Positions 927 through 35,029 of a stretch of DNA of 64,000 bases are shown piece after piece. Origin of the DNA: Carpediemonas membranifera BICM (lineage: Eukaryota; Protista; Fornicata); the NCBI GenBank assembly GCA_019828565.1, contig JAHDYR010000038.1, positions 202,735 through 266,734 of the forward strand. The letters are read 5' to 3'. Position numbers and translations under genes: made by a program. Position 1 is the stretch's first letter; each line of letters starts with the position of its first letter. The notes below the pieces were generated by a model, which had not been told where the DNA came from, did no database searches, and worked only from the letters and a program-made list of their open reading frames with translations.

Positions 927-986
927 CATGCTGCGTTTTCCGGTACTCTAACCGGGACTTAAAGTCCCAGAATCAAGTCCCGGAAT
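927..986 (+). repeat. Left terminal inverted repeat
   Basis: CATGCTGCGTTTTCCGGTACTCTAACCGGGACTTAAAGTCCCAGAATCAAGTCCCGGAAT; about 54/60 identical to the reverse complement of 34971-35029; internal GGGACTT/AAGTCCC sub-repeats. Confidence 0.92.
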
Positions 987-1438
987 CCTTGATTGATTTT
1001 GATCGATGTCGTCGGATCATCCCCAAAGTGGGTGACAGTCTTCTACTAGCCTAGTTCTACCTCTGGAAACATTATTAGCGCATGTCGATGTCACAAAAAA
1101 TATTTATGATCGTTTTCCGTATCGTCAGTGCAGGATAAGGTCGCATGACTTGGCCAAAGTCGCTCTTCAGAACTCGATCGTCTGACACATACAAACGCTA
1201 AAAGTGGTTGGCAAAGATGCATTAGACCTTGTATATGACGTGTATAGACAAAATTTCGGGTGTTGCACTGTCACCTCTGAGGGGTATCCTCTCAAAAAGT
1301 GTTGAAACTCCTACTGTAACATCCCCTTGCTGTCCTAGCAACGGAATAGTACTTTATTTACTTCAACTTTATCCCATTCGATAAAGAAAAGTCAAATTGT
1401 GTGAGCAATCTTCAACCTTAAAGTGCCATACAGGCATC

Positions 1439-2626
1439 ATGGAAAAGACCCAAAAACGAGAAATCCTGATTGCAATTGCAAAAGAAGTATTCTACTTTCA
1501 ACGCGATTGTGCTCAAGCCATGCCTGTTGCGGTTTCAGAGGTGTGCTGGGCTATTCTGCCAGATGATATCCGAGCTCTCTACAAGAAGAAGCAAGCGATG
1601 GCTTGTTCTCTTCGTCATGCCCTTATCCACGCTCTGGATGGACTCGCCCCCTCGTCTTACCAGATCAACACCGAGGGTAAGGTCAAGGGTGTGTTCCTCA
1701 AGGACTTCGGCGAGATCAACCTATCAAGGCTGCAGGACAACCTGCAGGCAGCATCAGGTACCACTAGCACTGTGGTATGGCAGCCTCCGGTTTCGCGCTA
1801 CATCAGCATCCCCTTCCAGACCTATTCGAAGAAGAAGGACAAGAGGGCTCGGAAACAGTCTCAACCCGCCCCTCAGTCGGTCGTAACTGTTCGTGACAAT
1901 CTGGCCAGTGAACACAGACAGCGGGAAGCAGCGCACATCGACCAAGTCGCTTCCCAATTTTCCACATGTGTGGCGCAGGCAACGGCACTTATCCAGACAG
2001 GAATGAACCGGCGCCACGCACTCGACAACTTCACTTATCAGCAGCTACGAAACTCATTGCGCATGTGTTGTGGGGTCTGTCACGATCCGATGAATCTGCT
2101 GCTGAAGATTGAGGACGACAACTCCCTGCAGTGCCAACAATGCGAGAGGTACTTCCATTATAGCTGTGTCAGTGGCTACTTGGAGGAGCGAATGGCATAC
2201 CCGGCATCTAACAGGGCCGATAAGCAGAAGATATCCATCTGCGATGACTGTAAGGCAATCAATGGTAACGACGAGTGCTTTCATCGTACACCTCCAACCG
2301 AGACCACCCAAGCAGCGGACTGTGGTAGAAGTATTAAGGATGGACCCAGCATGCTCTGCTACTTTTGTTCCAACTGGTTCTGTCCGGATCATATCGCGGA
2401 CACCGTTTTTGACACTGGAACTGACATGTTGAAGCGTCCTTCTCGTCGTGTTCCGGTGTGCGTGAATTGCTTTCCTCGCATTCAGAGAGGCCAGCGACAG
2501 TTCAACGGTGAGTATACCAACGCTGCCCGCGCTATTACAGAGCCATTGACACTCGCGGATGACGAGGCTCGTGATGATGTCAGTATCCGCGAGGAGGTGA
2601 GTGATGAGGAGGATGACCAAGAGTGA
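1439..2626 (+). CDS. PHD/zinc-finger protein (element cargo)
   Basis: CGVC...QCQQCERYFHYSC...ICDDC (C4HC3 PHD-like) plus a second Cys cluster CYFCSNWFCPDH...CVNC; acidic tail. First ATG 1439. Confidence 0.7.
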   Translation: MEKTQKREILIAIAKEVFYFQRDCAQAMPVAVSEVCWAILPDDIRALYKKKQAMACSLRHALIHALDGLAPSSYQINTEGKVKGVFLKDFGEINLSRLQDNLQAASGTTSTVVWQPPVSRYISIPFQTYSKKKDKRARKQSQPAPQSVVTVRDNLASEHRQREAAHIDQVASQFSTCVAQATALIQTGMNRRHALDNFTYQQLRNSLRMCCGVCHDPMNLLLKIEDDNSLQCQQCERYFHYSCVSGYLEERMAYPASNRADKQKISICDDCKAINGNDECFHRTPPTETTQAADCGRSIKDGPSMLCYFCSNWFCPDHIADTVFDTGTDMLKRPSRRVPVCVNCFPRIQRGQRQFNGEYTNAARAITEPLTLADDEARDDVSIREEVSDEEDDQE

Positions 2627-33796: not shown

Positions 33797-34970
33797 ATGC
33801 GCTGTTTAGTGGATGGGTCAAGGGTATCTGTGAGGAGCCGGAGGAGATCCGGGAACTCATCACTGTTGACGAGACAGCCAAGACGATTTGTGTAAGGACG
33901 GCGGACAGTGGTCTGGATGAGACTCTCTGCATCTGCAATCTGTGCAACAGTGAGCAGCGAGCGGAGGAGCTGATGAGGAGGACTGGGCACAATCTTCGCC
34001 CGAGAAGATAGATAGATGGATAATCGGAGTATGTATATAAAGGGTTCTTTATGTTTACACTATCTTCACCAATCTACAGTCAATTACGTCTATTGCGAGC
34101 GAAGAACAGCTTTCAGTAAGAAATTTGAGGCAACTGTCAGGTAATTCTTAGTAACGTCGTCGGCAATGGCGTAATAGTCATCAATTTCAGTCAAGTGACT
34201 CAGCTTAACGCGCATTTGCTTGATTTCGGCGATAAACTCGGCCCGCTTCATTCGTTTGTCATAAAGTGCATTCCGGCCATATCACAAGTTTTCTTCATCA
34301 CAAGGCACGCACGGGGGTGTAAGCGGGACCGAGGCTACCACCACAGCCTCTTCTGAGCCGATGGATACCTTTTGTTGATTTGCCAGAATTGACCAAACGA
34401 CGAGGAATGCTTGATATGCCGCGTATGGATGATTTGAAGAAGAACTGAAGGTGAAAGACAAAGATCATAGAAATACACATCATGCGGCTCACTTTTGGAG
34501 ACATTGGAGGTAAATTAGCTTTTAGGATCGTTTTTCGTTTGCCAGGCAAAGTTTTGAGTGTTTTCTCGAGAATACTCGATGCCGTATGCAATCTTGCTGC
34601 TATTTGATGCAGAACAAAGGTTGTTATGTGACACAGATGTTCTCACTTGCTTTCGGCCTTCTTTGTTGGCGAGCAAAAGCAAACTTCTTTGGGAGCAATT
34701 CCCAAAAGTCGCATCTTTACGCACCCAGGAAATTTTATCTCGGCATACTGGACCAGTGGGGGAGGCACGGCAGTCTATCCCGACCCTAGATGAACCATGA
34801 GACAGTTTTTCGACGAGAGTTTGTGCGATGCCACTGACTTCGCGAGTGAAGGTCTTCAGCATGTTGTACGGATGTCTAAACGATGCCTTGTGCAAGTGCA
34901 AGGCGTAATACGCTGTAGTTTAATTGTTTGAGCGCGTTCATTTTTTCTTGCAATCGTCCTTTTTTCATGT

Positions 34971-35029
34971 ATTCCGGGACTTATTCCGGGACTTTAAGTC
35001 CCGGTTAAAGTACCAGAAAAAACAGCATG
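34971..35029 (-). repeat. Right terminal inverted repeat
   Basis: ATTCCGGGACTT x2, TAAGTCCCGG...CAGCATG; reverse complement of the left end. Confidence 0.92.

Follow-up and report, generated by a model that had tools for sequence, protein, structure and literature searches.

Nested multi-gene DNA transposons with a predicted RAG1-like transposase in the metamonad Carpediemonas membranifera

The window analysed here is a 64,000-nucleotide (nt) stretch of the 24.2-Mb, 69-contig genome of Carpediemonas membranifera (contig 26, 202735-266734); all positions below are counted within it. Between 927 and 35029 it contains what is very probably a nested pair of autonomous-type DNA transposons with terminal inverted repeats (TIRs), both belonging to one diversified lineage. 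An earlier reading of the sequence alone, made with no database searches and referred to here as the sequence-only reading, had seen in this interval a single 34-kb element with about 20 cargo genes; the interval resolves instead into an outer element of 20.2 kb and a related inner one of 13.9 kb that has TIRs and a CC target-site duplication of its own. The outer element has about 10 open reading frames (ORFs) -- the transposase and some nine others. At 20.2 kb it is nevertheless, as that reading had it, far larger than typical elements with a DDE transposase (named for its aspartate, aspartate and glutamate catalytic residues), and it carries whole genes. The genome-wide comparison set consisted of five other outer-family copies together with left-end loci; copies are named by the contigs on which they lie (C67, C47 and so on), while L021, L022 and the like are loci outside this genome that carry relatives of the transposase.

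Ends and target site of the outer element

The boundaries of the outer element and its 2-bp duplication are known to the base. Both ends open with CATGCTG, and the junctions read TT/CATG...CATG/TT, a slash marking each joint. A repeat search gives inverted arms of 47 nt that are 89% complementary (927-973 and 34983-35029), and on gapped alignment, in which 53 positions match and a single 1-bp indel is needed, the TIR reaches about 60 bp. The TIR is bipartite, and its internal palindrome, GGGACTTAAAGTCCC, is identical in both outer ends. Reading the TT as part of the TIR was rejected, since AA would be required at the right end.

The target is the reverse transcriptase (RT) gene of a retroelement, the two halves of whose RVT_1 domain now lie on the two flanks. 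The minus-strand ORF 35032-36072 closes with ...GQAYRY and the ORF running from 924 opens with (N)TLGFGW; when the element and one TT are deleted in silico, the codon AAC is regained and the RT frame runs through uninterrupted. The corresponding empty site is present in five uninterrupted paralogous copies of the retroelement, which read ...CCTAGTGTGTT/GTATCTGTACG... with a single TT, and two of these five have 0 mismatches to window 625-926 over 302 nt. Since the flanking retroelement sequence remains identical to that of its paralogues, the outer insertion must be very recent. The CATG-starting TIRs of about 60 bp, the TT on either side and the split, rejoinable RT gene had all been described in the sequence-only reading and are borne out here, the alignment to uninterrupted retroelement copies that it proposed having supplied the five empty sites. 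The outer element thus has TIRs, a target-site duplication, an empty site and an encoded enzyme of predicted RNase-H fold, the features of a cut-and-paste transposon of class II, subclass 1, which would move by excision.

Two elements in 34 kb

In blastn comparisons, window 927-9840 and 23782-35029 are collinear, at 99.1-99.95% identity, with a 20,079-bp copy on C67. Without its insert the outer element measures 20,162 bp, as against 34,103 bp for the full bracketed interval. The ends of the insert read CATACTG...CAGTATG and those of the outer element CATGCTG...CAGCATG. The C67 copy keeps the uninterrupted site of the inner element, and its two alignments to the window overlap there by 2 bp (C67 8884-8885). 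A 120-bp probe of the outer/inner junction, run against the whole genome, found no second copy, so that this junction is unique. Inner-type insertions do occur elsewhere, on C68 within the transposase gene and on C47 at a site matching window 6924/6925; since nested insertions vary from copy to copy, the spread in size of the family (16-48 kb) is largely explained by a basic length of about 20 kb that nested relatives increase and internal deletions reduce. That the interval combines two unrelated insertions was rejected, the interior being collinear with an independent copy.

The elements being nested, the two transposase-like ORFs of the interval belong to different transposons. The sequence-only reading was right that they are related (30% identity over 212 amino acids (aa), E=1e-17, between the outer ORF and inner ORF 21145-22878), but there is one in each element and not two in one transposon.

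A 1.4-kb near-palindrome spans the outer/inner junction (8215-9637 versus 10115-11534, 92-99% complementary). The outer and inner kinase genes, which are close homologues, face each other there, each some 200-270 bp from the junction on its own side; this may be coincidence, homology-influenced targeting or the trace of a past exchange between the families.

The transposases

C67 carries the outer transposase ORF without any change, and C50 and C47 carry it nearly unchanged. The inner gene is degenerate, as its being spread over three frames indicates; its pieces match residues 332-528 and 558-690 of the outer enzyme, and the third piece matches the C-terminal residues 744-781 of the L021 transposase. 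Relatives are few: an exhaustive HMMER search found only 17 among 1.84 billion representative proteins, and the ten that were looked up comprise paralogues from C. membranifera, proteins of assembly GCA_002919055.1, and sequences from metagenome or Logan contigs. A family alignment, A1, was assembled from 13 sequences.

An AlphaFold2 model of the outer transposase built on A1 (predicted local distance difference score, pLDDT, 74.8; predicted template-modelling score, pTM, 0.70) has 45 Foldseek matches at E<=1e-3, and all of them are RAG1, RAGL or Transib proteins, the best being 6oeq_C at E=1.8e-8. The VIA alignment of model residues 97-729 with RAG1 459-1005 covers 449 residues (Z 14.1, root-mean-square deviation 5.9 A). 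An exhaustive scan of 48,161 chains, which does not depend on Foldseek, puts RAG1 first (13.2), followed by BbRAGL (12.6), the P element transposase (12.4, 300 residues aligned), HzTransib (10.3) and ISCth4 (8.0). Two aspartates are invariant in A1 and occupy the canonical RNase-H positions, D339 where beta-1 ends and D422 immediately following beta-4, and E687, E688 and E691, in an LLEExFERDF helix, are conserved in 12 of the 13 sequences; in the model, the order and spacing of these candidate catalytic residues would be compatible with the D600/D708/E962 triad of RAG1. The prediction thus supports a transposase that is RAG1/Transib-like by fold. Residues 211-278 are modelled as an ACT/PII-like ferredoxin-fold insert, with Z of about 8-9 to PII, ACT and CutA domains; a rough residue mapping places this insert outside the RAG1 alignment.

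Several results weigh against the RAG1 assignment. It rests on one predicted model, and the P element, with Z 12.4, comes close to the 13-14 of RAG1, which may be merely the nearest solved neighbour of the predicted fold. Searched with 13 family members, Pfam gave no match at E<=10, the RAG1 core domains and Transposase_21 included; phmmer and profile searches of PDB sequences with the transposase (E<=10) returned nothing relevant, and an ESM Atlas shape search was uninformative (best template-modelling score 0.28). The zinc-binding motifs that might be expected are missing as well: CxxC occurs in 0 of the 13 sequences and an H(3-4)H is not conserved anywhere from D422 to E691, where the only conserved histidines or cysteines are H521, H524 and C562.

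Among the rival explanations, the one that survives best puts the element on the CMC side of the CMCT clade, close to Mirage, Plavaka or ESTA, its likeness to RAG1 arising only from an apparent lack of CMC structures in the PDB. No CMC structures are among the structural matches and, to our knowledge, no CMC transposase structure has been solved. The CMCT clade, which unites EnSpm/CACTA, Mirage, Chapaev, Transib, Plavaka, ESTA as well as Lanisha (Kojima 2025, PMC12730594), is defined by 5'-CA..TG-3' termini and duplications of 2-5 bp, with 2 bp in Mirage and PlavakaA; the ends of PlavakaB start with CATCA, HHpred finds ESTA to be RAG1-like, and an epigenetic enzyme is carried by several of the lineages (PMC12730594). 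An Atlas feature search, which provides leads only (0.88-0.91), likewise lists a Transposase_21 cluster at 0.88 beside RAG1 clusters. Against this stands the Pfam result, which extends to every CMC family and gave none a match at E<=10 in the 13 members. A CMC affiliation is therefore a tentative alternative, less probable than a separate lineage with a RAG1/Transib-like fold.

Copies of the family in the genome

The left end, probed with 84-200 bp, occurs 20 times in the genome at 96-100% identity (16 of these are identical over 200 bp), and the right end about 19 times at 96-100%. Ten properly oriented pairs of left and right ends share a contig, spaced 16.2 to 62 kb; for four pairs beyond the five compared copies, the right-flank dinucleotides were probed with short pattern searches. 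Five of the ten same-contig pairs have matching 2-bp duplications: TT in the window (34.1 kb), TC on C68 (16.2 kb), TG on C47 (21.8 kb), GT on C24 (47.9 kb) and AA on C3 (22.0 kb). Taking p=1/16 for each end pair, five or more matches in ten would arise by chance with a probability of about 2e-4. The search for paired TIRs proposed in the sequence-only reading thus succeeds, with duplication-flanked copies of 16-48 kb. These five outer-family copies, the inner element and an element of GCA_002919055.1 all have duplications of 2 bp, and the wide variety of left-flank dinucleotides indicates that the target sequence is not strict. Short end pairs resembling miniature inverted-repeat elements were not seen among the genomic end pairs.

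The other five same-contig pairs (C67, with AA/TA, and C50, C38, C36 and C18) lack matching duplications, which weighs against the preferred explanation; recombination between 99%-identical copies, or the pairing of ends that belong to two different elements, would explain them. On contig 18, three left ends that share one orientation lie at 40575, 69528 and 97503 (minus strand), about 28-29 kb apart; the 30-nt flanks of two are identical, marking a duplication, segmental or tandem, of about 28 kb, and the right end of another copy (96136) is nested 1.3 kb inside one of the copies.

At least nine uninterrupted outer-type transposase ORFs, 99-100% identical, are present in the genome. Frames of 800-900 aa are open in at least four other subfamilies as well, whose identity to the outer enzyme is 51%, 48-58%, 35% and 28-32%, and a first screen of the genome yielded 217 candidate stretches. 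By these sequence comparisons, multiple copies and recent activity of the outer family are supported, and the superfamily is thus diversified and makes up a sizeable share of the 24-Mb genome.

The copies also bear on how the elements came to be nested. It is conceivable, if rather unlikely, that the whole 34.1-kb composite was the mobile unit, the inner element having been in place before the outer TIRs were cleaved. All 34,103 bp do lie between the outer TIRs with their TT copies, and nested insertions are also present in the 47.9-kb and 21.8-kb copies that matching duplications flank, so the transposase may tolerate long substrates. The 9840/9841 junction occurs in no second genomic copy, so that nothing shows the composite to move as one; yet cut-and-paste movement leaves no donor copy, and a unique junction is compatible with such mobility too. 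Also against it, nested insertions differ in position in every copy examined, as expected if they arrived after each copy had settled. The relative ages also fit it poorly: the outer insertion is very recent, its flank being identical to the paralogues, yet the genes of the inner element are already degenerate. Two separate insertions, the inner after the outer, are the more probable course. An assembly artefact, or two unrelated insertions mis-joined in a repeat-rich long-read assembly, is highly improbable, for although there are about 20 near-identical 20-kb copies, many ends are unpaired on their own contig and half of the same-contig pairs lack matching duplications, the flanks are halves of one retroelement copy that rejoin in frame with a single TT as in five paralogues, the interior is collinear end to end with an independent 20-kb copy, and the inner element has perfect TIRs and a duplication of its own.

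Within the outer element, an intergenic module of about 340-520 bp occurs five times in both orientations (4038-4421, 5859-6378, 7585-8100, 28636-29116 and 30738-31079), the copies being 96-100%, mostly 99-100%, identical. Three of the five lie between convergent gene ends and one upstream of the transposase, and the module may be a shared terminator or promoter cassette.

Cargo genes

The features of both elements are collected in Table 1. The PHD-type protein of the outer element has the C4HC3 pattern C211/C214/C232/C235/H240/C243/C268/C271, which does not vary among four homologues, two of them from other sources. A homologue search with this protein returned only itself. The SET assignment of the 242-aa protein comes from a four-sequence profile, which matches the SET domains of EHMT2/G9a at E=4.5e-8 and also those of EHMT1 and KMT5A; the lone sequence reaches E=0.13. 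Two clusters matched by the 572-aa protein in the Atlas partly carry the OTU family PF02338, and DGNC and His motifs are present in its sequence; it has no Pfam or PDB sequence match.

Table 1. Features of the two nested elements and their target site (window positions; for minus-strand features that are listed from high to low, in reading order)
Feature	Position	Strand	Evidence or remarks
Target gene, 3' part	924 down to 1	-	RVT_1 profile 119-205
Left TT target-site duplication	925-926		single TT in five paralogous empty sites
Left TIR, outer element	927-986	+	heptamer CATGCTG, 20-bp spacer, 15-bp palindrome GGGACTTAAAGTCCC at 28-42, further AAGTCCC at 49-55
Left part of outer element	927-9840	+	blastn 99.6-99.95% to C67 1-8885
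PHD-type zinc-finger protein with second Cys-rich module	1397-2626 (ATG 1439, 395 aa)	+	Pfam PHD E=7e-4, below cutoff
Internal inverted duplication, left arm, 2 kb	2415-4417		100% complementary to 28737-30738; also in C67
HEPN-like ORF, 359 aa, RNRAAH (Rx4H) motif	2941-4020	+	duplicate at 29247-30212(-); weak sub-cutoff Pfam matches (E 0.01-0.09) to three HEPN families
SET-domain lysine methyltransferase-like protein, 242 aa	4454-5182	-	profile with three GCA_002919055.1 homologues
Cargo ORF, 200 aa	5237-5839	+	no family match; intact in C67
Cargo ORF, 310 aa	6742-7674	+	no family match
Protein kinase, 434 aa, C-terminal zinc ribbon	8209-9513	-	passes the Pfam cutoff for Pkinase (E=2.8e-23)
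Nested inner element, 13,941 bp	9841-23781	+	perfect 49-bp TIRs 9841-9889 and 23733-23781; CC at 9839-9840 and 23782-23783
Inner kinase gene, broken into three ORFs	10239-11531	+	protein 88-98% identical to outer kinase; DNA inverted repeats
Inner PHD-type zinc-finger protein	12402-13643 (401 aa from ATG 12438)	+	homologue comparison
Inner conserved 359-aa cargo protein, no family assigned	13658-14755	-	blastp E=4e-33, 3e-23 and 4e-27 to homologues in L021, L022 and L059
Inner GNAT-like acetyltransferase ORF, 269 aa	19096-19905	-	Pfam Acetyltransf_7 E=3.4e-4, below cutoff
Inner transposase gene, split over three frames	22878-21145, 21138-20689, 20692-20282 (20282-22878)	-	degenerate copy
Outer cargo ORF clipped by inner insertion	23771-24850	-	359 aa here versus 413 aa in C67; last 54 codons moved to 9678-9840
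572-aa protein with OTU-like cysteine-protease C-terminal domain (lead)	26077-27795	+	Atlas features 0.91, 168-171 shared
Internal inverted duplication, right arm	28737-30738		contains second HEPN-like ORF 29247-30212(-)
Outer transposase, 782 aa, intact	31448-33796	+	predicted RAG1-like fold; candidate catalytic D339, D422, one of E687/E688/E691
Right TIR, outer element	34971-35029	-	about 19 genomic copies at 99-100%
Right TT target-site duplication	35030-35031		single TT in paralogous empty sites
Target gene, 5' part	35032-36072	-	retroelement ORF stopping within RT domain, RVT_1 profile 3-97

Cargo of this type is also found next to more distant transposases. In contigs of GCA_002919055.1, homologues of the PHD, SET, kinase and inner 359-aa proteins adjoin transposases that are 25-30% identical; homologues of the 359-aa protein adjoin the transposase in L021, L022 and L059. 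Those of the GNAT-like ORF occur on one GCA_002919055.1 contig and on an ENA metagenome contig that also has a PHD homologue, and in L059 and L062 they carry Acetyltransf Pfam matches. A complete relative of 11.6 kb is found at L021 (PPCM01000946.1 of GCA_002919055.1, 2168-13802), where it sits in the pol gene of a long-terminal-repeat retrotransposon; it has 74-nt TIRs starting from CATACTG and a GC duplication, and encodes an 851-aa transposase together with SET-like, PHD-like and 334-aa cargo homologues. Since homologues adjoin transposases of only 25-30% identity in other sources, the cargo is a long-standing part of these elements and not a recent capture.

Most plausibly the cargo would act on the chromatin around the element, and plausibly it might act on ubiquitin and RNA there as well. 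A bolder proposal, to which we give little credence, is that the PHD, SET, GNAT, OTU and kinase proteins form a transposon-encoded chromatin-control module required for transposition or for escape from silencing, the always-linked PHD protein being a histone-mark-reading partner of the transposase; this would amount to a counterpart, independent or ancestral, to the pairing of RAG1 with the PHD-bearing RAG2, in a deep-branching eukaryote that is without the origin recognition complex (ORC) and other canonical DNA-processing complexes. The HEPN and OTU identifications are weak leads, and a model of the PHD protein from a 4-sequence alignment was unusable (pLDDT 36), so that there is no evidence for a kelch propeller in it.

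The HEPN-like ORF varies between copies by a 63-nt in-frame indel, which is present in both arms of the window copy (3614-3676, with its mirror in 29477-29540) and once in C68, and absent from both arms in C67, C47, C50 and C38. The pattern suggests gene conversion between the arms within an element.

Relation to known transposons

RAG1, the RAGL proteins (ProtoRAG, BbRAGL) and Transib are the near-exclusive structural match of the modelled enzyme, over some 430-450 residues corresponding to RAG1 459-1005. As in RAG1, the predicted RNase-H core has one aspartate at the end of beta-1, another following beta-4, and, ahead of the helix with the conserved glutamates, a long helical insertion. The ends, too, may be analogous to the heptamer-spacer-nonamer signals of these systems, in that a heptamer CA...TG is followed by a second block about 20 bp inward. 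Unlike RAG1 and Transib, the family has no detectable sequence similarity to them and no CxxC/H(3-4)H zinc motif, it contains the ACT/PII-like insert, and it makes a 2-bp and not a 5-bp duplication; the heptamer is CATRCTG and not CACNNTG, with only the CA....TG frame in common. No RAG2-like kelch gene was seen, in contrast to the RAG1 systems. Transib elements measure roughly 3-4 kb; the elements described here are larger, at 11-22 kb with about 6-10 genes.

Within the CMCT clade, the closest comparisons are with Mirage, PlavakaA/B and ESTA, which share CA..TG termini (here CATRCTG...CAGYATG) and duplications of 2-3 bp; ESTA is RAG1-like in HHpred comparison, and Plavaka and ESTA are found with TET/JBP genes (PMC12730594). 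In these families, unlike the present one, C(2)C and H(3-4)H are retained. ESTA targets TA, whereas the dinucleotide duplicated here varies (TT, TC, TG, GT, AA, CC, GC), and the Plavaka and ESTA cargo is a single dioxygenase in fungal hosts, as opposed to a multi-gene set (PHD, SET, GNAT, kinase, OTU-like, HEPN-like) in a metamonad. Chromatin-type cargo is not unprecedented, as DNA transposons of fungi and oomycetes with epigenetic enzymes (TET/JBP, SET) have already been described (PMC12730594). The oomycete HarbingerS and MuDR elements with SET genes and the plant VANDAL elements with VANC resemble the present family in encoding a methyltransferase or epigenetic regulator of their own (PMC12730594), but they belong to the PIF/Harbinger and Mutator superfamilies and have a single accessory gene.

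Two further groups call for comparison. The P element transposase of Drosophila is the second-best structural class (Z 12.4), with 300 residues aligned, fewer than for RAG1. P elements make 8-bp duplications, and their transposase has a THAP domain and a GTP-binding insertion domain; Pfam gave no match to THAP or any other domain here, and nothing else points to such domains. Fungal Starships, to which the sequence-only reading had likened the element, are likewise large, with whole-gene cargo, exact boundaries and a target duplication. They are moved by a tyrosine recombinase (the DUF3435 "captain") and carry variable cargo that benefits the host. The present elements differ in having a DDE-type enzyme of predicted RAG1 fold, a core cargo conserved along with the transposase and a variation in size due in large part to nested relatives; no tyrosine recombinase was found in a Pfam domain scan of ORFs of at least 120 aa. 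Polinton, Helitron and tyrosine-recombinase elements were rejected, as there are no such genes and the element has TIRs and a 2-bp duplication.

The elements have accordingly been filed as a separate, deeply divergent lineage that would work like RAG1, Transib and CMC elements, set apart by motifs, duplication, heptamer and sequence searches. It is a member of no named family, because the zinc motifs are absent, sequence similarity is undetectable and none of three Transib features -- the 5-bp duplication, the CAC heptamer and membership by sequence -- is present. The CMC/Chapaev/Transib-related cut-and-paste element of the sequence-only reading is therefore retained in part: a TIR element with a 2-bp duplication and a predicted RAG1/Transib-like fold it is, but it has no Pfam match, lacks CxxC/H(3-4)H and does not make the 5-bp duplication of Transib. 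That reading also did not recognise a described family, and a literature search found no published description of the lineage; the paper on the C. membranifera genome makes no mention of transposons (PMC8516963).

If the assignment is right, RAG1-fold transposases extend to a metamonad, in a lineage visible by structure only. This lineage would have lost the zinc motif of the RAG1, Transib and CMC enzymes, and with its 2-bp stagger it offers a natural variant for the study of duplication length and end recognition. Its multi-gene, chromatin-type toolkit, conserved across relatives of 25-30% identity, opens a direct way to test how a transposon handles its own chromatin. The approximately 20 near-identical copies of 16-48 kb, which nest and break contigs, also matter for annotation, their ORFs being now filed as hypothetical host proteins.

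Proposed mechanism

The outer element inserted into the RT gene of the multi-copy retroelement, duplicating TT, and the inner element lies within the outer one, where it has cut 54 codons from one cargo gene. For movement, the 782-aa transposase is proposed to bind the bipartite TIR through the terminal heptamer and the internal palindrome 20 bp inward, and to pair both ends. Cleavage would take place at the terminal CA, through D339, D422 and a glutamate of the LLEExFERDF helix, and the ends would be joined to target phosphates with a 2-bp stagger and no strict target sequence. By analogy with RAG and Transib, hairpin chemistry is possible.

Neighbouring host genes

Host genes start just past the retroelement, on the minus strand at 36701-39030. 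One ORF there has Pyr_redox_2 and Fer4_20 domains, of the glutamate-synthase small-subunit type, and a second encodes an NAD_binding_1/FAD_binding_6 oxidoreductase. The guanine-plus-cytosine content is about 51% in the element versus 58-62% in these adjoining genes.

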